DNA of 64,000 nucleotides from Rebecca billardiae RCC1528 (taxonomy: Eukaryota; Protista; Haptophyta). Below are positions 478 through 62,800 of the stretch, piece after piece. Under the pieces are notes generated by a model that worked only from the letters and a program-made list of their open reading frames with translations, searched no databases and was not told the DNA's origin. The stretch covers positions 558,001 through 622,000 of the forward strand of contig OZ251250.1 in the NCBI GenBank assembly GCA_965240325.2, in the 5' to 3' direction. Each line of letters begins with the position of its first letter. Positions within the stretch are counted from its first letter, which is position 1. The position numbers and the translations under genes are program-made.

Positions 478-1318
478 ATGGAGCGCCGGTCGACACGCAG
501 TGACCCGGCGCCGGCGGGCGCAGGCTACAGGTGCGCGCGCGCCGCCCGCGAGCGCGCCGCGCGCCCCTCGTTGACGACGTGGCGCACGCGCCGCGCAAGC
601 CGGACCGCATCGCGCGGCAGCCGGACGCGCGGGCGCGCGATGGCCCCGCACGCGTGTGCCGTGGCCCACCGGCCGGTGTGCGCGCGCCACTCACGTGCGC
701 TGCTACGCCCGCGGCCGCCGCGCGCGCGCCGCTTTGCCCCGGCTGTCGTGATCCGCCGCGCCGGCGCGCGCAGCCTGCGCTCAGCCGGGAAGCGCCCAAT
801 GCCGCCGGCCGAGCTGCCCGCGGCAGGGCCGAAGCGGTGTGCGCCGACACGCTGCTCGCGCGCCGCGCCGCGCCGCGCACGCCGGCTCGCGCGCCGGCGC
901 GGCCGGCGCGCGGCGGTGGGCGCGCATGCGCGCGGCCTGCTGCCGGCGCGCCGCTGAGCCGTGCCTTGCCGCGCCGCGCGCGCGCGCACGCCGCGCCGCG
1001 CCGCGCCTCCGCCCGCCGCCGCGCAGGTCGAAGCGGCCCGTGCCCACGCCGCGCGGCAAGATGGCCGCCACGCCGCCGCCGCCGCTGCCTCCCAAGAGCG
1101 CTCCCAGCGCGTCGCTGCCACCGACGCAGCCGCCGCCGCCGCGCGCCGCGGCCGCAGACGGCGGCGGCAGCGGCGGCGGCGGCAGCGGCGCGGCGCGGGG
1201 CCTCCCGCCCGCCCACGAGCTCCCGCCCGAGCTGCGCGCGCACCTGCCTGCGCTCGACGCCGCGCTCGCGGCGGTGGGCAGCTCGGTGGCGGAGGTGACT
1301 GGCGGCGGCAGCAGACTC

Positions 1319-1349
<31 letters not shown>

Positions 1350-2259
1350 GCGGCGGGAGCAGCAGCGGCGGCGGCGGCGGCAGTGGCAGTGGCGCGGGCG
1401 GCTCGACGCTGCACTCGCTCCTCCGCCGCCTCTCCGCCGTCGAGCCCTCCCTCCTCGCCGCCTCCCAGGTGCCGCCGCCCGCAGCCCTCGAGGCGCTTCT
1501 GGAGGCGACGGGCGCCGGCGGCGGCGGCGGCGGGAGCGGGAGCGGCGGCGGCTCGGGCGGGCGGCTCGGCCTCGCCGACGCGGCCGCGTTCCCGCCCTTT
1601 GGCGCCGCCGCCGGCGGCGGCCACTTCCGCCAGCTGCTCCCACGCCTCCGCGCGTCCGGCGACGAGTCCGTTCAGCTCGCCGCCCTCACGGAGCTGTGCG
1701 ACCGGCTGGCGATGGCGACAGAGGACACGCTGCTCGTGGGCGGGATGAGCGTGGAGGAGTACGCGCCGGCGCTCGTCGCGCTGCTCAAGGCGCCGCACTC
1801 CGCCTCGCTCATGCTCCTCGCCTCCCGCGCCATCTGCCACCTCGTCGACCTCGTGCCGTCGGCGACGTCCGCGCTCGTGCAGGTCGGCGCGGCGAGCACG
1901 CTTTGCGAGCGGCTGCTGTGCGCAGAGTACATCGACCTGGCGGAGGAGGTGCTCGGCGCGCTGCGCAAGCTGTCGACCGAGCACGGCGGCACCGTCCTCC
2001 GCGCGGGCGGCATGCTCGCCGCCCTCCAGTTCGTCGACTTTTACACGTCGGGCGCGCAGCGGGTCGCCGTCTCGACCGCGGCCGCTCTGTGCTCGGCTGT
2101 GACACCGGCGACGGTCGGGCTGGCTGCGGAGGCGGCGCCGACGCTGTGCCGGCTGACCGCCGCGGCGGACGGGAAGGTGCTCGAGTCGGCGGTCAACGGC
2201 TGCGCGCGCCTCGTCGCGTGCCACGCGGGCGCGATCCGCGCGGCGCGCGCGAGCGCCGC

Positions 2260-5930: not shown

Positions 5931-8900
5931 CCGACGACGACGACGATGACGACGACGACAGCGGCCTCCCCCGCTTCCACGATGGCGGCGGCGGCGGCGG
6001 GCGGTACGGGCGCTTCTCTCTCTCGCTCGGCGGCGGCGCCGCCGCCGCCGCGGGCGGCGCCGCCCCCGACGTCCTCGCGGCCGTCTCGCGCCGCGGCCGC
6101 GCGGATGGCGGCGCGTTTGGCGGCGGCGGCGGCGGCGCGCCTTCGGAGCCGCCGGCGCGCGCCGCGCCGCCCGCGGGCGGCGGCGGCGGTGGGCGCGCGG
6201 CGGGCGTCGACGCGTCGGGGGTGCACACGGTCGAGCCTGGCGAGCGCGAGCTCGCGCTCCTCGCGCCGTCGGCCGCGGGCTCGGAGCCGCCGTCCAGCGC
6301 GCCAGCGCCAGCGCCCGGCGGCGGCGCTGGCGGCGGCGGCGGCGGCAACTCTGGTGGCGGCGGCGGCGCGGCGGCCTCGATCGCTCTGGTTCTGAATGGG
6401 CGCACGCTGCCGCATGACCTCTCGATCTTCCGCGCGGTGTGCCTGTACGGCCGCGCCGAGCTGCGCCCGCTGCTGTGCCTCGAGGCCGACTCGGAGGCGG
6501 GCGGCGGCGGCGGCGGCGACGGTGGCGGCGGGAGCGGCGGCGGCGCGGCGGCGGGCGGCGGCGCGGGCGCGGCGGCGCACGCGCCCGCGCCGGCGTATGT
6601 GACTCCCGCCGAGCGCGCGCGCGCGTACACACGGCTGTGGCATGCCACCTACTCTCTTACGTACATGCACGTGAACGCCGCGCCGCCGCCGCCCGCCGGC
6701 GTCGCGCCGTCGCCACCGCCGGCCGCGCCGCCGCCGCCGGCCGGCGGCGGTGGCGGCGGCGGTGGCGGCGGCGGCGGTGGCAGGCGCGCGGGCCGCGGCG
6801 GCGGCGCGGGCGACGCTGGCGCGGCCGCCGGCGCCGACGGCCCCAACGCCGCGGCCGGCGCGGCCGCGGACGAGCTCGGCGGGGCGCTCGCGCAGGTGGG
6901 CGCGCTCGCGGGCACGTGGGGGCTCTCGGCCGAGGCGGCCGAGGCGCTGCAGCTGCTGCAGCTGCTTCAGGCGCTGGAGGTGGAGGGAGGGCGTGCGCGC
7001 GCGCTCGAGGGGCTCGGGCTCGGCGCGGTGGTGGCGAGCGCCGCCGCGGCACCGACGGCGGCGGCGGGCGGCGGCGCGAGCGGCGGCGGCGGCGGCGGCA
7101 CCGGCGGTGAGACGGGCGGCGGCGCGCTGCAGCTGGCCGCCGCCGGCGGCGGCTGCGGCGGCGGCGGCGGCGGCGGCGGCGCGCCTCTCTCGGCCGCAAG
7201 CGCGCGCGGGGCGCTCGCTGCCGCGGCGGCGCGGCCGCTGCCCGCCGCGACGCTTGTGTCTTCGCAGCTCACGGCGAAGCTGTCGCGCGCGCTGCTCGAC
7301 CCGCTCGCACTGTGCGCGCACGCGCTGCCGCAGTGGGCGCGCGTCCTCCCGCGCGCGGCGCCGTTCCTCTTTCCGTTCGAGCTGCGCCGACACAACCTGC
7401 GGTGCACGGCGCTCGGCGCGACGCGAGCGCTCCAGCGCGTGCACGCGGTGCTGAGCGCGGACGACGGCGGCGCGCAGGCGGCGGGCGGCGGCGGCGGCGG
7501 CGCACACGCCGCGCACGGCCGCGCGGACGCCGCCGCCGCCGGCCTCGGCGCGCCGCGCGCCGGACTCGCCGGACTCGACGCGACGAAACTCTCGCGGCTG
7601 CCGCGCGAGAAGGTTCGCGTCTTCCGCGAGAACCTTCTCGCGTCGGCGGCGCGGCTGATGGCGCAGTACGCGCCGTCGCGCGGGATTCTGGAGGTGGAGT
7701 TCGCCGGCGAGGCGGGCACCGGGCTCGGCCCCACGCTTGAGTTCTACTCGCTCGTCAGCCAGGAGCTCCGCTGCGCGGCGGGCGTGTGGCGCGCGGACGG
7801 CGGCGGCGCGGACGGCTTGGACGGCGGCGGGCCGGAGGCGCTGAAGAGAGGCGTGAGCGGCGGCGGCGCGGCGGGCGGCGCGGGCGCGGACGCACACATG
7901 GCCGACGCGCCCGGCGGCGCGGCGTCCGACGGCGCGTCCGCCGCCGCCGCGACCTCGCAGGTCCGCGCCGCCGCGCCGCCGCCCGCCGCGCCGCCGCCGC
8001 CGCCGCCACTGGGGCCCAGGCAGCTTTTCCCGCGCCCGCTCTCGCCGGGGGACGGCGCGGGCGCGGCGCGCGCGCAGCTCGTGTTCACGCTGCTCGGCCG
8101 CTTCGTCGCGAAGGCTGTGCTCGACGACCGGCTGGTCGACCTGCCGCTCACCGCCGCCTTCTATCGAGTGGCGCTGCGCCGCGCCGACGTCGGTGCGCGG
8201 CGGCGGCGCGGCGCGCGCTCGCGCCGCGCGCCGCCGCGCCGCGCGCGCACCGCCGCCGCCAACGCCGCCGCCTCTGCGCGCGCCGCCGCGCCGCGCCGCG
8301 CCGCGACACCGCTCATCCGAGCCCGCAACCCACGCCGCACCCCGCGCGCCCCCGCGCCGCAGGGCTGCGCGACGTCGCCGAGCTCGACCCGCAGCTCGCG
8401 CGCACGCTCGCAAGACTCGCGGCGCTCGGCGCGCGCGCGCGCGCGCTGCTCGCCGCTGGCCTGTCGGCGGAGGCGGTGGAGGCGGGGGTTACGCTGGACG
8501 GCGTGCGCGTGGCGGAGCTCGGCCTCGACTGGACGCTGCCCGGCTTCGCGGACATCGAGCTCTGCGAGGGCGGCGCCGAGCTGGTGCGCGCCTTTGCATT
8601 CGTGTGCAAACGCTCGCGCGTGTGCTCTGCGCCGCGCGCGTGTGCTCTGTCCTGCGTGCGTGTGTGCCATCGCTGCACCGCGGGTGTTGCCGCGTGTGTG
8701 TGCCGTGGCGATGACGACAGCGCATGCACATTCGCTTCGAGCCTTCCAAGGCGCCCCGCCGCCTCTCTCCGGGGCGCGGGGCGCGGTGCGGTCAGCATTG
8801 CGCGGGGTCTCTGAGCCACGCACGCGCGCGGCACCGCGCGGCGGTGTGCGCGGCGTGTGCGTGCGCGGCGTGTGCATGCGCGGCGTGTGCGTGCGCGGCG

Positions 8901-10232: not shown

Positions 10233-10782
10233 CGACCGCCGCGCGATGGCGGACCGATGGTGACGCACACGGCAGTCTGCAAGCTCAGCCGTCAGCGAGT
10301 AGCGACGACGTCAATAACTGTTGGCGCGCGCGGACGCGCGGCGGCGCCGGACGGCGTCACACGGGCCCGGCGGGTGGCGTGTGCGCCGATACTGTATACT
10401 CTGTATGTACTCTGCTGGCGAACGATTGCCATTGTATATATATATACTGTACGACGACGGTGACGATGATGGCGGATACACGACTGCGTCGAACCGTGAC
10501 CGTCTTGCTGACTTGCAGCGCGAGTCTTGCTCTGAAGCCTCAGCGCGAAATAAAAACTATAAAAAGGCGCCGCCCGCCTGGCAGCAAAATAAGCAGCAGA
10601 AGAAATCAAGCCGGCGGGAGCGCGGCCCGCCCGGACTCTCTGCACAAGCTCCTCCAAAGCGCGCCGGTCGAGACGCGTGGCACCCCTTCGCTGCTGCCGC
10701 GCTCATCAGCAGCAGCAGTCCGCCGCGCGCCGACGACGACAGCTCCCCCGACGCGCCGCGCCGCCAGCGTCACGACCGCGCG

Positions 10783-11273
10783 ATGCCGTCGGCGTCGGAG
10801 CTGCAGCGCGGGGCGCCGGGCGAGGGCGAGGCCGACCCCGCCGCCGGCGGCGCGAGCCCGCACCTCGGCCCCTCCGCCACGCGCTCCGAGCGCTCGGAGC
10901 CAGTAGTCGGTTCAGATCGCTATCTCGACCGCGCGTTCGAGTCGCTGCTCGGCGCCGCGCGGCTGGAGGCGTACCTGCCGCAGCTGCGCGCGCAGGGCGT
11001 GGAGTCGCTCGCGGACCTGCTCGTCATCCCCGACGACGAGCTCGCCGAGTTCCTCCGCGCCGAGGTCGGCATGAGCCGCTTCGAGGCGCCTCGACTCGTG
11101 TCAGCCGTGCAGCAGCGGCGCGCGGCCGACGCGGCGGTCGCGGACGTGCGCGCGCACCCGTCGCGCGGCGGCGGCCGCGGGCTGGGGAGCGGGTGGGAGG
11201 TCGTGCCCCGCCACCACCACGACCACCACGCGCAGCCGCCCACCATCCCCATCCACGGCGGCGGCGGCGGCTT

Positions 11274-11309
<36 letters not shown>

Positions 11310-12848
11310 GCCCACGCTTGCGCTGGGCTTCGGCGTGGACGGGCGGCCCGTGCTGCAGCCCGCGCTCGGCGGCGGCGGTGGCGATGGCGCCGGCGGTGGG
11401 TACATGCTCACGCCGTGGGGCCCGCTCGTCGGCCTCGGCGGCGCAGGCTACGCGCCGGGCGCGCAGCCGTATTTGCAGCCGCCGCAGCCGCCGCCGCCGC
11501 CGCCGCCGCCGCCGCGCGCCGAGCCGGAGGTGGAGGCGAGCGAGGAGGAAGGCTGGGCGGGCGGGCGCGCGCGCGGCGGGCGGGGCCGCGCGCCCGGCGC
11601 GGCGCGCGAGCCGCCGCGCAAGCAGCACGCCGCCGACGGCGGCGGCGAGACGTCCGCCGCGGCGATCGCGTGGCGCGTGCTTATTATTACGCTCGGCACA
11701 AATGTCATTATTTTATACTCATGGAGCGTGCGCGACCTGCGCCCGCTCGCGCTGTGGATCGCGCTGCTGCTCGCCGCGCTGCTCTCGGCGGGCGCGGGCG
11801 GCGGCGCCGGCGCCGCCGACGCCTCGCGCGAGCGCAGGCGCGAGCGCGGAGGGCTGCTCGGCGCGCTGCTTGCCCTTGGGGACTCGGTGGCGTGGGCTGT
11901 GCGCACGCTGGCGCGCGCCGCGCTACTGTGCGCGCTGGTGTGGGTGCTGATCGCGGCGGTGCAGCCGCCGCCGCCCGCGCCGCCGGCGCCGCCGCTGCCG
12001 CAGCCGGGCGCGCAGCCGCACCCCGCCGCCGGCGCGGACGCGCCCCAGCCGCCGCCGCCGCCGCCGCCGCCCCCTCCGCCCGCAGGGCGCTCGCTAGCCG
12101 AGCAGCTGGCGAATTTCGAGTTTCGCGAGCTTGACCTCGACGCGTGGCTGGGGCTGGGCTCGGCGGGGGGCGCGCCGAGCGCGGCGGCGGCCGGCGGGGC
12201 CGGCGCGGACGGCGGCGGTGGCGGGGAGCGCGCGGCAGCCGCGGGCGGCGCCGCCGACACGCCGCCGGGGCCCGCCGCCGACGCGGCCGCCGACGCGGGC
12301 GGTGGCGCGTGCGCCGCGGATGCGGCGTCGGGCGCGTGCGAGGCCGAGGCGGCCGCCGAGCCGTGGTCCGACGCGCAGCGGCGCGCGGCAGCGAGCGCGC
12401 TCGAGGCCGGCGCGGCGCGCAAGGACGCCGGCGTCGCGCTGTACACCGCCGGCGACTTTGGCGGAGCGTTTGACGAATTCGGCGCGGCACTCGACGCTCT
12501 CGCGGCTGCGGTGCCGCCGAGCGCGCCGGAGGGCGCGGTGGCGCGCACCCCGGCGCAGGCGGCGGTGCCGCCGGACACGGCCGCGGCGGCGCGCGCGCTG
12601 CGCCTGGCCCTCCACCTCAACGCGGCGCGCGCCGCCCTCTCCGCCGACTCGCCCCTCGACGCCGTGGCCTCGGCGACGAAAGCGCTTCGACTGGAGCCGG
12701 GCTCGCAGAAGGGCCTGTACCGGCGCGCGCAGGCGCACACGGCGCTCGGCCAGCGCGAGATTGCAATCTCCGACCTCGAGGCGCTACTGGGCCGCTACCC
12801 GGATAACGGCCCGGCGGAGGCGCTGCTCGCGCAGCTGCGGATCGACGG

Positions 12849-42999: not shown

Positions 43000-45821
43000 A
43001 TGGCGACGGCTGTGCTCACCGTGGGCAAGGGCAAGCGTTCCTGCGCGAAGCCTAGGAAGCCCAAGCTGCATCGCAAAGGTGCCTAACGCATCGGGCGCCA
43101 CGTCTCTGCCGCATCTGCATGGCTGCGCATGGCCGCGGCGCTCAGCCGCACGAGATGCTCAAGCTGCGCGCGCGCGAGGCCGCGAGCGAGGTGGACCACT
43201 CGATCATGCCGAACGAGAACTACCTGGCGGAGGTCAAGCGCAGCGTCAACAGCCTCGTCGCCATCAAGGCCCAGCGGAAGAAGAACAACCTGCTGCGTGT
43301 AGCCAAGCTGCGGCTCTTCTCGTGAGACGCGCTCGTCTTGCATGCCTTCACCTCGCTCGACGACGAGGGCGTCGTGCACTAGGCGCGCGAGAAGGACCGC
43401 ACACTGAGCATCGTGGGCTCGCGCCAGCCCGAGAGTTCTCGACGTGGCTCAACCTGGGCATGCGCCACCCGATCCCGCCGCCGGTGGCTGGCTCACGTGA
43501 GAGCGCGCTGCGCAATCGCGAGCACGCGGGCGCGGGCGTGATGATGATCGGCAGCGAGTCGGCGGCGCGGCCGTGGGCGCAGGCCGTGGGCGCCGTGCTG
43601 GATCGCTTGGAGCACTACGGCAAGTCCGCGCGCCCGCGCGGGCAGCCGCATGTCCTCCTCCTCTCGGCGGACACGGGCCAAACGCAGCGCACTCGCGCGC
43701 GGCCACGATCGCCATCGTGCGCAACTATGAGGGTGTTGCGCTCGCGTCGTCGGAGGCGATCGCCATCTCGGAGCGGCCGGACTCGGACATGCCCGAGCTA
43801 TGGAGTGCGGACGCCGACGGGATCAATGACGTGATCCGGAGCGGCCGGCTCCCACCGCGACCGGCGCCGCCAGCTGCCGCCGCTGCACGTGGCCAGCGCG
43901 GCAGGGCGGCGCGGCTGGCGGCGCTGCAGGCGGCGCGGCCGGCGACGCGGCCGGCGGCGCGGCCGGCGGCAGCGGCGGCAGCGGCAGCGGTAGCGGCGTA
44001 GCTGGCGGTGCCGCCGGCGCTGGAGTCCGCGCGGCCGGTTGCGCGGTCGGCGGCGCGGCCGGCGGCGCGGCGGGCGGCGCGGCTGGCAACGCGGGCGCGT
44101 CCGCGGGCACGGGCGGCGGCGCGGCCGGCGCGAGCGGCAGCGGCAGCGGCGTGGCTGGCGGCACAGTCGGCGCTGGCGTCCGTGCGGCCGGTGGCGCGGC
44201 CGGCGGCGCGGCCAGCGGCGCGGCTGACAGCGCGGGCGGTGGCGCGGCCGGCGGCGGCACTGCCGGCGGCGGCGCGGCCGGCGGCGCGGCCGCGCGCGGC
44301 CGGCGCGGCCGGCAGCAGCGGCGGCAGCTGCAGCGACAGCGGCGTGACTGGCGACACAGCCGGCGTTGGCGTCCGCGCGGCCGGTGGCGCGGCCTGCGGC
44401 GCGGCCGGCGGCGCGGCTGACAGCGCGGGCGATGGCGGGCCCGGTGGCGGCGCGCCCGACGGCGGCACGCCCGACAACTGCGCGCCAGGCGGCGGTGCGC
44501 CCGGCGACGCGGCCGGACGCGGCCGGCGGCGCGGCTGGCAACGCGGGCGCGGGTGCTGGCGGCGGCGCGGGCGGCGCGGGCGGCAGCTGCAGTGGCGTGG
44601 CTGGCGGCACAGCTGGCGTTGGCGTCCGCGCGGCTGGAGGCGCGGCCGGAGGTGCGGCCGGCGGCGCGGACAGCGGCGCGGCTGACAGCGCTCGCGATCG
44701 CGCGGCCGGCGGCGGCGCGGCCGGCGGCGGCGCGGCCGGCGGTGGCGCGGCCGGCGGCGGCGCGGCCGGTGCGGGCGGCAGCAGCAGCACTGGTGGCAGC
44801 AGCAGCGGCAGCTGCGTGGCTGGCGGCACCGCTGGCGCTGGCGTCCGCGCGGCCGGTGGCGCGGCCGGCGGCGCGGCCGGGGGCGCGGCCGGGGGCGCGG
44901 CTGGCAACGTGGGCGCGGGCGCGGGCGCGGGCGGCGGCGTGGGCGGCGCGGCCGGCAGTGGCAGCGGCGTGGCTAGCGGCACAGCCGGTGCTGGCGTCCG
45001 CGTGGCCGGTGGCGCGGCATGTGGCGCGGCCAGCCGCGCGGCTGACAGTGCGGGTGGTGGTGCGGCTGGTGGCGGCGCGGCCGGCGGCGGCGCGGCCGGC
45101 GGCGGCGCGCAGCAGCGCGGCCTCGGTGGCAGCACTGCCTCGGCAGGCGGCAGCGCGGCCGGCGGCGGTTTTGGCGGCGGCGCCGAGGCGGCCGACTACG
45201 CGGAGGAGCAGAAGGCCATCGTGGCGTGCACCGGCGCTTACGTCAGCCTCGCCAGCCTCGCCGGCCAGGGCTCGCACAACGTCCCACCGCTCCGCTTCAA
45301 CGTCTGGGCGGTCACGGAGGCGGGCGCAGACGGCGTCTCGCCTCAGGCGGCGGGGGCGCCTCGTGCAGCTCGCGGACGAGCAGGTGCAGGGGCATTTCGT
45401 GCAGGTGACCAAGCGTGCGATGCCGCTCGTGCACGCGCGCAAGTCACTCGACTCATTCGTCCGCGAGTACGCCGAGGGGAAGAAGTCGACGGCGGAGCCG
45501 CACATCTCGACGGTCGCGCAGCTCGTGCGCCGCGTGTCGCTTGCGACGTGGGCAGAGGAGTTCGGCGACAAGGTGCGGCGGCTCTGGCTGAAGAAGTACG
45601 CCAAGCGGCAGCGCGAATGGCAGCGCAGGGCGGAGACCGACGCGATCGACCTGATCGCGGAGTGCATGACGGCGCGCAAGCTCCTGCGCGAGGAGGCTGG
45701 GCTTCCGGAGAAGGAGTTTTCGGCACTCAGGAGCAAATTGATGGCGGCGCGCTCGCCGGACCGCTCGGTGACGGTGATTTACGGCGCGGATGTCGCGCGC
45801 GACGGTAGCGGGGCTGGGTAG
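43000..45821 (+). pseudogene. Interrupted ORF of unknown family inside the inverted repeats
   Basis: Coding-like blocks (HEMLKLRAREAASEVDHSIMPNENYLAEVKR..., REFSTWLNLGMRHP..., ADYAEEQKAIVACTG..., GHFVQVTKRAMPL...WLKKYAKRQREW) are separated by stops and frameshifts. Confidence 0.55.
43880..45185. repeat. GC-rich higher-order minisatellite based on GGCGCGGCCGGC
   Basis: Recurring units GGCGCGGCTGACAGCGCG, GCTGGCGGCACAG and GGCGTCCGCGCGGCCGG. Confidence 0.85.
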
Positions 45822-49474: not shown

Positions 49475-51824
49475 TCACATGATGGCACACTTGCTCTCCG
49501 GCACACCGTCAGCGCCGAGCTCGCCCACAGGGCCCGTGGGCGGCTCCGCCTCGCCGACCGCGTTGGCCTCGGCGCCGACGCGGCCGATCTCCGTGCCCGA
49601 GGGGGCGTACAGCACCGCCTCGTCGCCGGCGTCGTTCCACATGTAACTGTGGCGGTTACGGTGTCGGTTACGGCGGGGCGAGCGGGTGCGAAGGTCAGGG
49701 CGAGCATGGCGGCTACGGGGCGTGCGCCGGTGTGCGCCCGCGCCCGCGCCGCCCGCACGGCGCGGGCAGGCACGCAGGCGCAGGGCGTGCGGCGCGCGCG
49801 CGCGCGCGCAGGCGGGCGCAGTCACGCCGCGCGGGTCCCGCGCGCGCACGCACCGCGGCGACCACCAGAGCTCGGTGAGCGGGTCTCGCTTCTTGCGCTG
49901 GTTCTTTTTGCCCGACCAGACCGTAACTGCCATCCCTGGCTGCAGCACAAAGTCCGGTGGGAAGTCGAACTGCAGGTCGTCGGAGTGGACGGACTTGACC
50001 TGTGCGCGTGGCGGGCACGCCGGCGCGCGCGAGGACAACGGCGCGCGTGAGCGCACGCGGGGCGGCGGCGCGCGCGCATGCCGCCGTGTGCGGCGGCGGC
50101 GGCGGCGCACAGCGCTGTGCGGCGCGGCGCACCGAGAAGCCCCCGAGCGGCGCGGGCGCGTCGCCGGCGTTCTTGAGCGAGAAGCAGTCGTTCGGCAGGT
50201 CGAGAGTGGCGAGGTAAGGCCGTGGGCCGAGGGCGGCGCTGCCGCCCGCGCCACCCGCCGAGCCGGCGCCGCCACCCAACGTGACGCGCCGTCGCTTCGG
50301 CTCCTTGGTGGGCGTGATGCCAAGCCGCTCCTCCTCGCCCTCGAGCAGCTTCGTGTACGTCTTCAGCTCCTCCGACAGCGAGATCTTCACGTCCATCAGC
50401 TCGTTGAACTCGACCTCCTTCTGCTGGCGCGCGGCGCGCGCCTCTGCGCGCGGGAAAAAAGCAAAAATAAGCCATATAAGAAAAGAACAGTCAGTAGAGG
50501 CGCGCGGGGGCGGCGAGTGAGCGCGCGCGTGCAGCGCCAGCGGCGGGTGCGCGGGCTCCGCGCGGCCGTGTAGGCCGTGGCGCCACCACCTGCCCGGCGG
50601 CCGACCGGCCGGTCGGCACGGCGCCGCCACGCTCGCGCCGGGGCCCAACTGCTGCACGGCGCGCGCGACAGGACAAGACAAGGGCGCGGCGCGGCGCGGC
50701 GCGGCGCGGCGAGCGGACAGCAGCGCGCGGCGCGCGCACCCTGCAGCTGCTGATCGAGGCGCGCGATGGCGGCCTCGAAGTGGGCGACGCGGTCGCCGAG
50801 CTTCTTCTCCAGCTCGGTGGCCTTCGCCTCCGCCGCCGACGTGCGCGCGCGCAGCTCGCGCATCTGCTCCGTGAGCTCGGTCGCGCGCGCGCCCGCGCCC
50901 TGACGCGCGGCCTTCTCCTCCTCGACCGACCGAAGCAGTTCCGCTTCGACGGCGTTGAAGTGGGCCTGGAGCGCGTCGAGCTCGGCCTGGCGCTCCTCCT
51001 CGGCGCGCTTCTTCTGCTTCTCCATCGCCTCCTGCAGCTGCTTGTCGTAGCTCGCCTTCAGCCGGTCCACCTCCGAGCGCGAGCCACCGGACAGCTCGGC
51101 GATCTGCGCGCGATACGTTTCAGACTCTTTGCGCCGGAGCTCCTCGGCGGTGGCGAGCTGGTCGCGCAGCGGCGCGAGCTTCTTCTCGAGCAGCGCGGCC
51201 TTGGACTCGGAGACCTGCATCGCCTTCTGCAGCTCCGCCACGCGCTCCTCCGCCTCGCGCGCGCGCCCGCCCAGCCGGTCGCGCTCGTCCGTCACGGTGC
51301 GCAGCTTGATCTCGAGATCGTCTGCGAGCGCCGCCTTCTTCGACGCGGCGTTGCGCTCCTTGACGGCGTCATTGGCCTGCGTGGTCAGCGCGCCGACCTT
51401 GCCCTTGAGCTCGGTGATCAGCTCCACGTCCTTCTCCGCCGTCTTGCGCATCTCCGCCAGCTGCTTCTCGTAGAGGTTCCGCATGGAATCGGACTGCGCC
51501 TTGTGCGTCGACGCGGCCACGTCCACGCGCGACTGGAGCTCCTCGTTGGTGGCCTCGAGCTCCTTCATGCGCGAGAGGAAGTACTGCAGCCGCGCGTTCA
51601 GGTTGTGCAGCGTGTCGCGCTCCTCCACGCGCGACAGCCGCGTCGCCGAGTCGCTGCCCACTGCGCGGCGGAGACGAGCGCGCCGAGCCGGGCCGCACCG
51701 CGCCGCGCGCGCGACACGCGCGGTGAGACAGGCGGCGGGCGAGGCCGCGCGCGCGGCGGTGCGGACGCATCGGCACGGCGCGCGCCACGAGCGCGCGCGC
51801 ACTCGATGAACGCCGCTCCGTCAT
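49475..51824 (-). CDS. Nuclear lamin (B-type architecture), 523 aa, 5 exons
   Basis: Exons 51824-51803, 51660-50740, 50443-50133, 49999-49854, 49646-49475 (1572 nt). Coil 1A 'SRVEERDTLHNLNARLQYFLSRMKELEATNEEL', rod end 'LMDVKISLSEELKTYTKLLEGEEERL', NLS 'PKRRR', Ig tail 'FDFPPDFVLQPGMAVTVWSG...WNDAGDEAVLY', CaaX 'CAIM*'. Confidence 0.95.
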
Positions 51825-52065
51825 CTCCGCCGCCGTCCGATGCGTCGCCGCGAGCGCCGAGGTGCCGAGCTAGCAAGGGTGCCTGCCTGCTCACCAGCCG
51901 AGCTCGGCAGTCGGCCGTGAGCTTCCGCAGGCGTTGGTCTGGCCGGACAGTCCGGAGGCAACAGGCACATTGCCAGTGCAGCGGTGCAGCCCGGCGAGCG
52001 GGAAGCAAGCGCAGAGGGCGTGCGCGCCACAGGCGCGCGGTGGCCGTGCGAGATCCGCCACGCCC

Positions 52066-52957
52066 ATGTCTGCCGACGCCGAGGTCGCCTCGCGGCTGCA
52101 GCACCTGATCGCGCAGGGCCAGTCGCAGGATGTCGTCCAGTACGCCGAGGAATTTGAGCTCGCCGTGCGCGCTGCGCGGCCGCGTGCCGTCCGCCGCGCC
52201 TCGCGTCGCGCGGCCGCGCGGCACAGCGACGCTTACCGCTCGCGCGCGGCCGCACTGTTCTGCTCGCGCAGCTCGGCCACGCGAGCGTGAATGCGCAGAC
52301 CTCGTGCGTCGTGTACACGGCGCAGCTCCTCGGCTACCTCATCTCGCGCGATCTGAACAACGCCAGATTTCTGTGGAAGCGCATTCCGGCCGACACGCGC
52401 GGGGCGGACGCAGAGCTGGGGAAGGCGTGGCAAGTGGGCAAGCACATGGTGCGCGCGCGCTCGTGGGCACCCACGCCACGGGTCCTCCTGGGCAGCCGCG
52501 CCGCCGCCCGCGCGCGCTTCTCACCCTCGCTCGCCGCGCGCTCTGTGCGCGCTCTGCGCGCGTGCGTGCGCACCACGCCTCCGCCGCGCCGCGCCGCGCC
52601 GCGCAGTGGAAGGGCGAGCGCGGCGAGGCGCTCCGCGCGCTCGGCGCCGCGAGCGGCTGGAGCGCGCTCGCCGCCCCACTCGTCGGCATGCTCCACGCCG
52701 CGCTCACCGAGCACACGCTCCGCCTCATCGCCGACAGCTACACGTCGATCCAGCTGGCGGATGCGGCGCAGATGCTAGCGACAACGGCGGACTCGGTGGC
52801 GTCGCTCGCGCAGCAGCGCGGCTGGGACGTGCAGCCCGCGCCGGGCGGCGGCGCGGCGGTGCTGCTGCCGAGGCCCGCGCCGCGCGCGGCGTGCGCGCAT
52901 GACCTGCGCCTGAGCCAGCTCACGCAGCTCACCAAGCTCGTCGCTCAGCTGGAGTGA
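52066..52957 (+). CDS. CSN8: COP9 signalosome subunit 8, 208 aa, 3 exons (52066-52164, 52272-52448, 52607-52957)
   Basis: 'YTAQLLGYLISRDLNNARFLWKRIP', 'LIADSYTSI', 'RGW' and C-terminal 'QLTQLTKLVAQLE'. Confidence 0.93.
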
Positions 52958-57730: not shown

Positions 57731-59422
57731 TCAGCGGTAGTTGGTGGTCGGTACAAGACCGGCGTAGCGCGCTGCCGGGTGGCGCTGCGCGTCCTGCGGC
57801 AGGCTGCCGCCCACGACGCCGGCGACGCCGCCGACCACGCCCGTGCCCACCGCCCCGCCCGCCGCAGCCTGGGACTTGCCACCGTTCTGGCTCGCCGCCA
57901 GCTGCTGCGCACGCTGGCCGCCGCCGCCGCCACTCGGCGCGACGACGACGGTACCCGCCGCGGCCGCGCTCGCCGCCGCCGCCGCCGAGAGCTCGGCGCG
58001 CGCCGCAAGCCGCTCGCGCGACTGCAGGGCCACGCGGAGCTGCTTCGCGCGCAGCGCCTCGGCGCGGACGGCGTCCCTGTACCCCGAGCGCTCGTCCTCC
58101 AGCTGCGGGCGCGAGGCGGCGGAGGCGCGCGCACGGCGCGCGCGAGTGTTCGCGCGCCACGCGGGCGCGGGTAAAGCGGGTAAATCGGGGAGCGGCGCGG
58201 CGTACGGGGCGGGGCGTGCGCAAAGCCCCGCGTGCTCGCACGGAAGGCGCCCCCGCCCGCCCTGCGCCACTGGCACGGAGCGCGTGCCCTCAGCCCCCCC
58301 TAGCCCGAACCACCGCCACCGCAAGCCGGCGCGCGCGCGCGCATGCGTGCGTGCATGCGCGCGCCGCGCGTGTGCATGCGCGCGCGCGGGCGCGCGGGCA
58401 TGCGCGCGCGGGTGCGCGTGCGCACGCGCATGGCGGGGCGCGTTGGCGCGCGGGCGCACCTTTCGAATGTGCTCGGCGGTCTTGTGCGAGGCGAGCTCGG
58501 CGAGCACCTCCGCCTCGATCTTGGCGCGCTGCTCCAGCTGCCAGCGCGACACCGCCTGCGCAGGCCACGGCGCCTGCGCACGCGCGCGGCCGGCGCGCAG
58601 CGGCGCGCGGCGCGGAGCGCGCGGCGCGGAGCAAGGGTGTGCAAGTGAGCGCGCGCGCGCGCGCGCGGGCGCCGTGCGTGCGTGGTCCGCGGGGCGCGGC
58701 GTGGCGTGGCGGAGGCAGGGCGAGGCCGGGCGCCCTGCCGGCGGCACGCACGCGGGGTGCGCCGCCCGACCGAGCGCCGCGCGCGCACGCACACGCCCGC
58801 ACACACGCGCGCACACACGCGCGCACACACGCGCGCACACACGCGCACACACGCGCGCACACACGCGCACCCACACGCCCGCACACACGCGCACCCACAC
58901 GCCCGCACACACGCGCACACACGCGCGCACACACGCGCGCGAGAGCGCGGGCGCACGCGCCGCGCACGCGCCACCGCGCCGCGCGACCGCGCGCACATGT
59001 GAGTGGCCGCCCGAGCGCCAGGCCGCCACCTCCTCCCGGAGCTCGGCGACCGTCAGCGCCTCCAGGCCCGCGCCCGGCCCCGCCGCCGCCCCGCCGCCGC
59101 CAACGCCGCCGCCAGCGCCCTCAGCGGCGGCCGCAGCCGCGATCGCCGCCGCGGCCGCGCCGCGCGGCGGTGTGTCGGCGCGCGGCGTGAGCGTCCCCCG
59201 CGGCGTCTGGACGAGCGCGCCGCCGGCGTCGCCGCGCGGCGTGGGCACGAGGTCCGCCGCCGCGCGCACGTCCGCGTGCTGCTGCCGCTGCGCCAAGTTC
59301 CCCGGGAGCTGCGGCCGCGCGAGCGGCGCCGACGGCGGGCGCGCGCCGCGCGGTGTTGTTGCCCGTGACCCTCGGGGCACGTCGGCGCCGCGCGGCGTCG
59401 CGCCGCCGCCGCCGCCGCCGCT

Positions 59423-59455
<33 letters not shown>

Positions 59456-59801
59456 GACCCCGCCGCGCGGCGTCGCGCCACCGGCGCTGCCGCCCGCGCG
59501 CGGCGTCGCGCCGCCGCCGCCGCCGCCTCGCGGCGTGGCGCCGCCGCCGCCGCGCGGCGTGGCGCCGCCGCCGCCGCTGCCGCCGAGTGCGCCGCCGTGC
59601 GCTGGCCAGCCTGCGAAACTTCCGGAAAGTTCCGAGCCGCCGCCCGGCCTGAGCGCGCAGCTGGCCTGGCTCGGCGCGCGGCCGATCGGCGCAGCGCCCT
59701 CCAGCGGCAGCGGCAGCAGCTCGGCCAGCTGCGCCTGCGTCAGCCGCGCGCTGGGCGGCAGCGGCGGCTGCGCGCGCGCGCCGTGCCGCGCGCCCGGCGG
59801 C

Positions 59802-59850
<49 letters not shown>

Positions 59851-62800
59851 GCTCTGCGGCGGCGGCGCCCCCGACCCCGCTGCCGCCGCCGGCGACGGCG
59901 CCGAGCGTGAGCCCGAGCGCCGCCGAGCCCTCCTCCGCCACGCGGCCGTGCGCGCGCAGCACCTCGCGCAGCGCCGGCAGCGCGCTCAGCTCGAGCGGCG
60001 GCGCGCGCATGTGCGCGGGCACCAGCACTCTGTAACGGTCCGAATTTACCCGTATGGGTAATTCGCCGCGCTCGACGCCCTCGAGCGACGCGCAGAGGCG
60101 GAGGAGCGCGTTGAAGAGGACGGCGAGGTCGTGCGCGGACGCGCCGTCGCGCGCGCTCGCCGCACCCTCCGCCGCCTCCGCGCGCGCCGCCGCCTCGCGC
60201 GCCGCGCCCTCCGCCGCGTCCGCGCGCGCTGTCGCCTCCGCTTGCGCGCGGCGCAATTGCGCGCTATGCTCGGCGCGCAGCGTTGCGAGCTCGCGCGCGT
60301 GCGCGTCGGCCGCGCGCTGCGTCGCGCGGCGCACGGCCGCGTCGGTCTCGTGCGCGCCCTCCGCCGTGGCGCGCAGCGCGTGCGGCACCGCGTTCACGAT
60401 CGCCGCCTGCTCGGCGAGCAGCGACTGCGAGCGCGCCGCCACGCTCGCAACCTCTCGAGCGCGCGCGCGCGCGTCGGCGCGCAGTCCTTCGGCCTCCCGG
60501 CGCGCGGCGGCCGCGTCGTCCAGAGCCTGCTTGAGGCGCTCGCGCTCGCGGGCGAGCTCGGCGCGCAGCTTGGCCTCGCGCTCGGCGGCGGCGGCGAGCT
60601 GTGCGTACGACCCCTCGTCCACGCCGCCGCCCGCGCCGCCGCCCGCGCCGCCGTGGCCGCCGGCCGCCGCGGCCGCCGCAGCCAACAAAGGGTGTTGTGT
60701 GCCGGAGGCGCCGGGGCGGGAGGCGCCGCCGCCGACACCGCCGCCGGCGGCGGCAGCGCTGGCTGTGTTGTGTGCACCGAGCAGCGCCGCCATCATGCCC
60801 ACGCCGCCGCCGCCCGGCGCGCCCTCGCCACCGCCGCCCATCCCACCAACCCCGCGCCCCGGCGCACCCGCGGCCTCGCCCGCCGCGGCCGCCGCACCTG
60901 CCAACACAGCGCGAACCTCTGGCGGCAGCGCGCCGTCCGCGCCGCCGCCCGCCGCGCCGCCTCCCAGCAGGGCTTTGAGCTGCTCCGCGTGCGCGGCGGA
61001 GACGTTGGCGAGCTCGAGCTTGAGCGAGGCGACCTCCTGCTGGAGCGCGTGGATCCTCGCGAGCTGCGGGTTCATAGCCTCGCCGCTCGACAGCGTCGGC
61101 TTGTTCATCACCTGTGGCGGCGCGCGGCGCGGCAACACCCGGGCCAACGGCGGCGGCGGCGCGGCGTGAGCGGCGGCGGCGGCGCGGGAGCGGCGCGCGA
61201 GCCGCCCACTGCGGCGCCGCGCCCACTGCGACGACGCCGCGCCCACCGCGGCGGCACCCGCCCACGCCCGCCCGCCGGCGCGCGCGCCGGCACGCCCACC
61301 GCGGCACCCGCCCACCGTGACGCCGCGCCCACCGCGGCAACCGCCTGCGCGCCCACTGCAGCACCCGTCCGCGCGCCCACTGCGGCACCGCCCGCGCGCC
61401 CGCGCGCGCACACCTGCAGACAGCGCGAGGCGAAGAGCAGCGTGTTGGTCGACTCGTCGTGCGCGTCGTGCGCGGGGTTGATCGTCGCGAGGAGCGTGGT
61501 GAACGAGTTCCCGCCGAGCGACTCCTGCAGCATCCGCGTGAGCTTCGAATCTCGGAACGGAATGTGCATGCCGCCGGGCCGGTTAGCGCCCGCGCCTGCA
61601 GACGCGCTGTTCAGAGCCATGACCACAGAACCGAGCGCCGAGAGAGAGCGATTGATGGTGAGCGCCTCCTTGAGGCGCTGCCCCTCCGAGCCGGACTTGT
61701 TGAGCCGCTCCGAGCCCGCCAGGTCCACCAGGTGCAGCTTCCCCGCGATCGTCTTCCCCGTCTCCGCGTTCGTCTGCACGAGCTGCAAAGTAAACACAGT
61801 ATGCGAGCGCGACGAAACTTCGTTCAATAGCGTCTCGTGCGTCGCGCGCAGCGCGGAGCACGCGGAGATGACGGCCATCACCTCCTCGATCGAGGAGACC
61901 TCGATGTGCTCGAGCTTGTCCACGAACACCCGCCCGTCCGCCGCCTCCCGGATCTCCGTCCGGATGTTCTTCCGCAGGTCCTCCACCGTGAGGTCGTGGC
62001 GCGCGCGCTCGCGCTCGCTCCAGCCCGCGCGCGCGCGGCCGTGCAGAGGCGCGTACTCAGCCGAGCCGCCGAGGAGGGCGGAGGCGCCGCCGGCGCCGCG
62101 CTGCGGCGGGTGGGAGGAGGCGGAGGAGGACTCGGCGACGATCGAGCCGCTCGTCGCGCGGCGCGCGAGCTGCACCGCCCGCGCCACGTCGGCGAGCTTG
62201 CCGCGGCCGCCCGCGCCGCCGCCGCCCGCGCCGCCCGCGCCGCCGTCGAGCGTCGTGCGCGCCTGCTGCACCGCGCGCCCGAGGTCGTACAGCTGGTCGA
62301 GGTAGTTCTCGACGAAGGAGACGAAGACGCTCGCGCGCACGTTCGAGCCCACCAGCCGCTTCCGCCGCTCCACCTCGGCGAACATGAACTCGAGCGCGCG
62401 CGGCACGATCCCGCGGTCCGCGCCGCCCTCGCCGAAAATCGAAAACGTTTTTCCCGAGCCGGTCTGCCCGTAGGCAAAGCAGCACGAGTTGAAGCCCTTG
62501 ACGACGTGCGCGCAGAGCGGGCGGCAGACCGAGCTGAAGATGTGCTCCTGCGCGGCGGCGGGAGCCGACGCGCCGCGCCGCGCGCCGCGTGAGCGCACGC
62601 GAGCGGCGGCCGGGCACGCGCGGATGCGCGCGCGCGGCGCAGCGCCGCGCCGCGCCGCCTCGGCCATGCGCGCGCACCTGCGTCGTCTCGGGCATGAAGA
62701 CGTCGTCGAAGCTGAACTCGCGCTCGGGCTTCGTCTCCTCCTGCCCCTTCGGCGGCCGCACGTGCAGCGTGCCCGGGTCAGACGGGAACGTGGTGTACAG

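Follow-up and report, generated by a model that had tools for sequence, protein, structure and literature searches.

We analyzed a stretch of 64,000 nucleotides from the haptophyte Rebecca billardiae RCC1528 (contig OZ251250.1, positions 558,001 to 622,000), hereafter called the window. Between positions 51824 and 49475 its minus strand harbors a gene for a lamin, which in animals forms the lining of the nucleus. The gene is composed of five exons interrupted by four GT-AG introns, and its spliced coding sequence (1572 nt, 523 codons plus stop) is in frame throughout, from the ATG at 51824 to the TGA at 49477-49475. A first-pass annotation of the window had already proposed this gene. The coordinates given there agreed exactly with our model, and four introns had been annotated as well. 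In the deduced protein a short head is followed by the rod of intermediate filament (IF) proteins, the motif TPTK, the basic cluster KRRR, a Gly/Ala-rich spacer, the lamin tail domain and the CaaX box CAIM. The locus very probably represents a single-copy-type Pavlovales lamin gene, orthologous to the lamins of CCMP459, CCMP2436 and RCC1486 and to KFE25_006612 of Diacronema lutheri. Its product adds one more orthologue, apparently from a different though related species.

The first exon (51803-51824, 22 nt) comprises the ATG and six further codons (together MTERRSS, including the basophilic motif RRSS). Its final nucleotide starts a Met codon that is split by the intron, and it ends at the donor GTGCGCGCGC. 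It is separated by intron 1 (51661-51802, 142 nt, 85% GC) from exon 2 (50740-51660), whose 921 nt encode the remaining head and most of the rod from coil 1A to late coil 2. Intron 2 (50444-50739, 296 nt) precedes exon 3 (50133-50443, 311 nt), in which the end of the rod, the linker with TPTK and the nuclear localization signal (NLS), the Gly/Ala-rich spacer and the first strands of the lamin tail reside. Intron 3 (50000-50132, 133 nt) is located within the tail domain after ...GGFS. The central strands of this domain are encoded by exon 4 (49854-49999, 146 nt), while exon 5 (49475-49646, 172 nt including the TGA), which is reached across intron 4 (49647-49853, 207 nt), contributes the last tail strands, an acidic/Gly spacer and the CaaX box. 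All four introns have GT..AG borders, start with GTGCG, end with CAG and show a GC content of 76-85%; the three split codons encode Met, Glu and Arg. Two features are confined to intron 2, namely an AT-/pyrimidine-rich tract of 45 nt just 5' of its acceptor (about 50450-50500) and, at about 50690-50725, a short stretch of CGCGC-type pentamer repeats. We also considered whether exon 2 could begin further upstream by in-frame read-through, and rejected this, as the respective frame lacks an ATG and offers only a GTG. As the first-pass annotation had remarked, a bacterial-style list of open reading frames (ORFs) fragments the gene, breaking 49475-51824 into three overlapping ORFs on the minus strand. 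ORF-based tracks thus miss the lamin gene in a genome with 72% GC and very GC-rich introns.

A search with exon 2 yielded five full-length proteins of 509-520 amino acids containing both Filament and lamin tail domains (E 4.8e-118 to 4e-69, 51-72% identity), a similarity well above the level of chance. The only named one among them is KFE25_006612 of D. lutheri; another one is an MMETSP transcript. The closest orthologue, P0001, is 72% identical to exon 2 over 312 residues and 82% identical to exon 3 (residues 310-411 of P0001), while exon 4 is 66-77% identical to the orthologues. P0001 is encoded by a contiguous ORF of 513 codons on an intronless contig of 1920 nt (L002). It corresponds to the published entry of Pavlovales sp. 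RCC1486, allowing for errors in the machine-read supplement, and P0003 corresponds to the published lamin of Pavlova sp. CCMP459. When the five orthologues were compared with the window by tblastn, the high-scoring segment pairs broke at the exon edges, residues 4-315, 310-411, 402-459 and 460-513 of P0001 falling on exons 2, 3, 4 and 5, respectively. A word-based search with a profile built from the five orthologues retrieved eight Pavlovales-type sequences among 5.8 billion clusters. Beyond the Pavlovales, only animal lamins were found by this search, with fish lamin B1 next in line over 93% of the length (E 5e-33 to 1e-30). Searching the PDB sequences with exon 2 gave matches to human lamin A/C only (chains 6jlb and 6yf5). 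The identity to animal lamins was 21-27%.

The annotated lamin gene of D. lutheri (L001:6001-8113) contains three introns, located after MSEGRRSS, ...QQLE and ...WWSPR. Their positions are those of introns 1, 2 and 4 of the window, i.e., three of the four. The first exon of D. lutheri is similarly short (eight codons, MSEGRRSS) and ends at the position of window intron 1; a start of the type M-S-E-x-R-R-S/L-S was present in four of the five orthologues. Window intron 3 (50000-50132) is the extra one and has no counterpart in the corresponding part of the D. lutheri orthologue (L001:7361-7777), which indicates an intron gain or loss within the Pavlovales. In both species the lamin gene is arranged head to head with a gene of the CSN8_PSD8_EIF3K type. 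Transcript-derived orthologues continue across each junction; together with the breaks at the exon edges, the common introns and the shared CSN8 neighbor, this speaks for the short first exon as well as for each of the four junctions. The model is likewise supported by the ranking of fish B-type lamins directly behind the Pavlovales proteins. In the window, this neighbor is an intron-bearing gene of the CSN8/PSMD8/eIF3K (PCI) family on the plus strand (52067-52957), and about 240 bp (51825-52066) lie between the two start codons; in D. lutheri the divergent pair consists of L001:4995-5844 (CSN8-type) and 6001-8113 (lamin). The preservation of this arrangement suggests a conserved bidirectional promoter.

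The hallmarks of lamins that had been listed in the first-pass annotation (coil 1A, rod end, NLS, Ig-fold tail and CaaX box) were all recovered in this order. The head comprises MTERRSS, the Met of the split codon and GSDSATRLSR, and coil 1A starts with LHNLNARL. According to the rod start in Pfam the head has about 19 residues, somewhat more than the about 15 estimated before. The rod-end consensus YTKLLEGEEERL (50322-50357) occupies the same motif position as YRKLLEGEEERL in vertebrate lamins and is followed by G-I-T-P-T-K. Nine residues past the rod end, the monopartite basic cluster KRRR (50286-50297) constitutes a predicted NLS; all Pavlovales orthologues possess K-R-R-R or K-K-R-R-R. The lamin tail (Ig-fold) domain (49577-50216), which is split by introns 3 and 4, was recognized by exon-wise identity to the tail of P0001. 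The CaaX box C-A-I-M (49478-49489) is situated directly 5' of the stop codon, and the orthologues all end with C-A/V-I/V-M. CAIM is also the CaaX box of human lamin B1 (PMC5630835 supplement).

Searches with the window were run exon by exon, and Pfam scores are therefore given per exon. Exon 2 matched positions 1-273 of the 313 positions of Filament (PF00038) with 39.1 bits (E 8.9e-10), and exon 3 matched positions 276-313 with 32.4 bits (E 1e-07). The two pieces are collinear and together span the model, indicating that the rod is complete. The 48 residues of exon 4 gave a weak match to the lamin tail domain (LTD, PF00932; positions 48-77 of 109, 16.7 bits, E 0.0095), the domain being split over exons 3 to 5. 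In the profile search that had been proposed to check the annotation, Filament was thus matched across exons 2 and 3, while LTD gave only this weak match in the window and a score above the Pfam cut-off in P0001 (41.6 bits). All five orthologues passed both gathering cut-offs (Filament 64-74 bits, LTD 38.5-41.9 bits). An AlphaFold2 model of the P0001 tail (residues 352-513) revealed values of the predicted local distance difference test of 88-95 in its core. Compared with the PDB by Foldseek, the top 16 matches of this model were all lamin Ig domains, the best one being human lamin B1 (3jt0_A, E 5.4e-09, TM score 0.81 on the target, root-mean-square deviation 2.2 Å).

Lamin homologues have been reported in twelve lineages including haptophytes, and those of oomycetes, dinoflagellates and haptophytes were described as closest to the inferred ancestral architecture (Koreny & Field 2016, PMC5630835). 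The same paper prints the lamins of Pavlovales sp. CCMP2436, Pavlova sp. CCMP459 and Pavlovales sp. RCC1486, states that such taxa have one lamin gene per genome, presents a lamin tree that mirrors the species tree, and demonstrates nuclear filaments for the lamins of Symbiodinium and Phytophthora, the only ones for which heterologous expression has been published (GFP fusions in HEK293T cells). Neither haptophytes nor Pavlova nor CDK1 come up in Kollmar 2015 (PMC4448529). Since three Pavlovales lamins were published in 2016, a metazoan-style lamin in an alga is not a new discovery. The lamin of the first-pass annotation is real and resides in a haptophyte genome of the Pavlovales type, but as a discovery it was overstated.

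The Pavlovales lamins of RCC1486, CCMP459, CCMP2436 and D. lutheri belong to a similar length class (509-520 amino acids compared to 523 in the window) and display the same order of features (head, rod span of 331 residues, T-P, K-R-R-R, LTD and C-a-a-M). Their identity to the window is 51-72% for exon 2 and reaches 82% for exon 3, and they share the head motif S-A/V-T-R; D. lutheri additionally has the three intron positions and the CSN8 neighbor in common with the window. On the other hand, the window contains a distinct species-level sequence (the best rod match being 72% identical) and, compared to D. lutheri, one extra intron inside the tail domain. Its Gly/Ala-rich spacer between NLS and tail is shared only with P0001, and it has the full T-P-x-K, where most Pavlovales orthologues have only T-P. 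The window protein resembles vertebrate lamins B1 and B2 in the rod-end motifs, the gap-free head motif, the NLS behind the rod, the Ig-fold tail (by way of the P0001 model) and the CaaX box ending with Met, which is that of lamin B1. It differs from vertebrate B-type lamins in its shorter head (about 19 versus 30-50 residues), rod span (331 versus 352-354 residues) and tail (150-160 versus about 200 residues), as well as in S-A instead of S-P in the head and a single T-P instead of S-P-S-P after the rod. The lamins of Dictyostelium (NE81) and Phytophthora are non-animal proteins with rod, NLS, LTD-type tail and CaaX box like that of the window. Dictyostelid and oomycete lamins keep the S-P in the head, whereas the Pavlovales lamins have lost this proline.

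The motif S-A-T-R in the head (51638-51649) lies at the position homologous to the CDK1 site S-P-T-R of animal lamins. In a phmmer alignment, SATRLSRVEER within SATRLSRVEERDTLHNLNARL was aligned without gaps to human lamin A/C, with S-A-T-R on S-P-T-R. The same register was obtained with about 25 vertebrate lamins, which have S/T-P-T/A-R. At the position of the proline, the window and four orthologues have Ala and P0005 has Val; none of the six Pavlovales sequences contains Pro. The altered head site noticed in the first-pass annotation is thus confirmed by the alignment and holds for the whole order. No S/T-P was detected in exons 1 and 2 of the window, nor in the heads of the Pavlovales orthologues. 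An alternative first exon that would restore S-P was not found: exon 1 matches the start and the intron position of D. lutheri, and the heads of the orthologues are devoid of S/T-P. Hence, the lamin of the window lacks the S/T-P before coil 1A by which lamins are also recognized; this site is a regulatory, not a structural feature. Some accepted lamins have no CDK1 site in the head (PMC5630835). S-P before coil 1A is kept in the lamins of dictyostelids (M-S-P-S-R, Polysphondylium) and Phytophthora (L-S-P-I-K), while the Symbiodinium lamin has no S-P at this position (PMC5630835 supplement).

Altogether, the window lamin contains two S/T-P sites, of which one belongs to the T-P-T-K behind the rod and the other to W-W-S-P within the Ig domain. 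T-P-T-K (50304-50315), annotated before as a consensus of cyclin-dependent kinases (CDKs), is located three residues past the rod and is the sole full consensus of this type (S/T-P-x-K/R) in the protein. Its T-P is invariant in all five orthologues; the full form T-P-x-K occurs only in the window and P0001. Judging from the sequences, the sole conserved and exposed S/T-P site of these lamins is that just after the rod.

From established lamin biology, the window lamin would be expected to dimerize and to form filaments through its rod, to be imported into the nucleus through KRRR and to be farnesylated on the Cys of CAIM. A CaaX box with Met as the last residue directs farnesyltransferase. The protein may then be attached beneath the inner nuclear membrane and form a lamina resembling the B type. 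If this lamina is dismantled at mitosis, the likely trigger would be the single conserved T-P behind the rod, which in the window has the full form T-P-x-K. Sites for basophilic kinases in the head (RRSS, R-L-S-R) might assist disassembly; this scheme of mitotic control is speculative as a whole. It is plausible, as the first-pass annotation proposed, that mitotic disassembly is controlled differently. As a tentative and rather doubtful extension, the lamins of all Pavlovales could correspond in nature to the classical head-site mutants (lamin A S22A, NE81 S122A). Mitotic dynamics of their lamina would then be governed by the single T-P after the rod or by kinases other than CDKs that target RRSS and R-L-S-R in the basic head.

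Several points weigh against the assignment as a functional lamin gene. The single-exon scores remain under the Pfam gathering cut-offs (39.1 and 32.4 bits versus 40 for Filament, 16.7 versus 34.3 for LTD). The Ig fold was modeled on the orthologue P0001, to which the tail exons of the window are 52-82% identical, and the alignment behind this model included vertebrate lamin tails. From motif to motif, the rod of the window and of each of the five orthologues spans 331 residues, compared to 352-354 in vertebrate lamins; the alignment gaps making up the shortfall of 22 residues were scattered and allowed no reliable placement. Lamin-type rods have six extra heptads in coil 1B compared to vertebrate cytoplasmic IFs. 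Finally, the evidence for splicing and expression in R. billardiae is exclusively comparative. The short rod would fit a cytoplasmic IF-like or generic coiled-coil protein, and coiled coils attract spurious matches, as seen in weak extra Pfam matches and weak tblastn matches elsewhere in the window. We consider such a protein extremely unlikely, since both rod-end motifs, the NLS-like cluster, the LTD and the CaaX box co-occur in lamin order and the next best matches of the profile search were lamins and not cytoplasmic IFs. It is also very unlikely that the locus is an unexpressed or decaying pseudogene with a functional copy elsewhere, even though a search for sequencing runs listed no RNA run and the protein collection yielded no identical entry (the closest one to exon 2 being 72% identical). 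The reading frame is open through all five exons and the GT-AG borders are canonical, every motif that is invariant in the orthologues is intact in the window, the locus is syntenic with the single gene of D. lutheri, and one lamin gene per genome is reported for such taxa (Koreny & Field, PMC5630835). The strikingly metazoan-like architecture and the identity of CAIM with the CaaX box of human lamin B1 might point to contaminating animal DNA or to a gene recently acquired from an animal by horizontal transfer. To this explanation we assign next to no probability, because the identity to animal lamins is just 21-27%, the window has 72% GC with introns of 76-85% GC and GTGCG donors that are not of animal style, synteny with D. 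lutheri exists, and the published lamin tree mirrors the species tree (PMC5630835).

As to mitosis, the lamina might not be disassembled by CDK at all, but stay polymerized or be handled by other kinases in a mitosis without full breakdown. The absence of the head proline in all six Pavlovales sequences fits this idea, as does the minimal T-P, instead of T-P-x-K/R, behind the rod of four of the five orthologues. Moreover, in Dictyostelium NE81, S122 at the flank of the head is the demonstrated CDK1 switch for mitotic disassembly, and assemblies of the S122A mutant persist through mitosis (PMC7464662), from which it follows that losing the head site can suffice to block disassembly. However, every Pavlovales lamin has kept the T-P behind the rod, a pattern suggestive of selection. 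In animals, sites on both flanks of the rod contribute to lamin disassembly. Mitosis in Pavlova may be open; the papers searched gave nothing usable on the mode of mitosis in haptophytes, Pavlovales included. On balance, a lamina independent of CDK appears unlikely to us.

The window adds a genomic copy with exon structure, conserved introns and a syntenic neighbor to the small set of haptophyte lamins, the published ones originating from transcriptomes. It strengthens the case, already made in print, for a B-type-like lamin older than the animals. A point not spelled out in the cited papers is that the order as a whole lacks the proline of the head CDK1 site and has kept the T-P after the rod without exception. 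This combination is a testable hint on how lamina disassembly may be organized in lineages other than animals and amoebozoans; the advance is small, and no new kind of system is involved. Should the Pavlovales lamins indeed be equivalent to head-site mutants, they would offer a simple natural system for asking which rod flank suffices for lamin disassembly.

Outside the lamin gene, the rods of P0002 and P0005 gave weak tblastn matches (25-35% identity, E 1e-4 to 1e-9) in very GC-rich stretches of the window (758-1351, 7178-7918, 10765-11544, 44441-45175 and 59166-60622), at 59-61 kb on both strands. These are probably low-complexity translations rich in Ala, Arg and Glu, and weak tblastn matches of the D. 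lutheri lamin to other GC-rich parts of the window were judged to be of this kind, too. The window as a whole has 72% GC and is strongly mosaic, its 2-kb bins ranging from 56% GC (20-22 kb) to 83% (2-8 kb and 58-60 kb).

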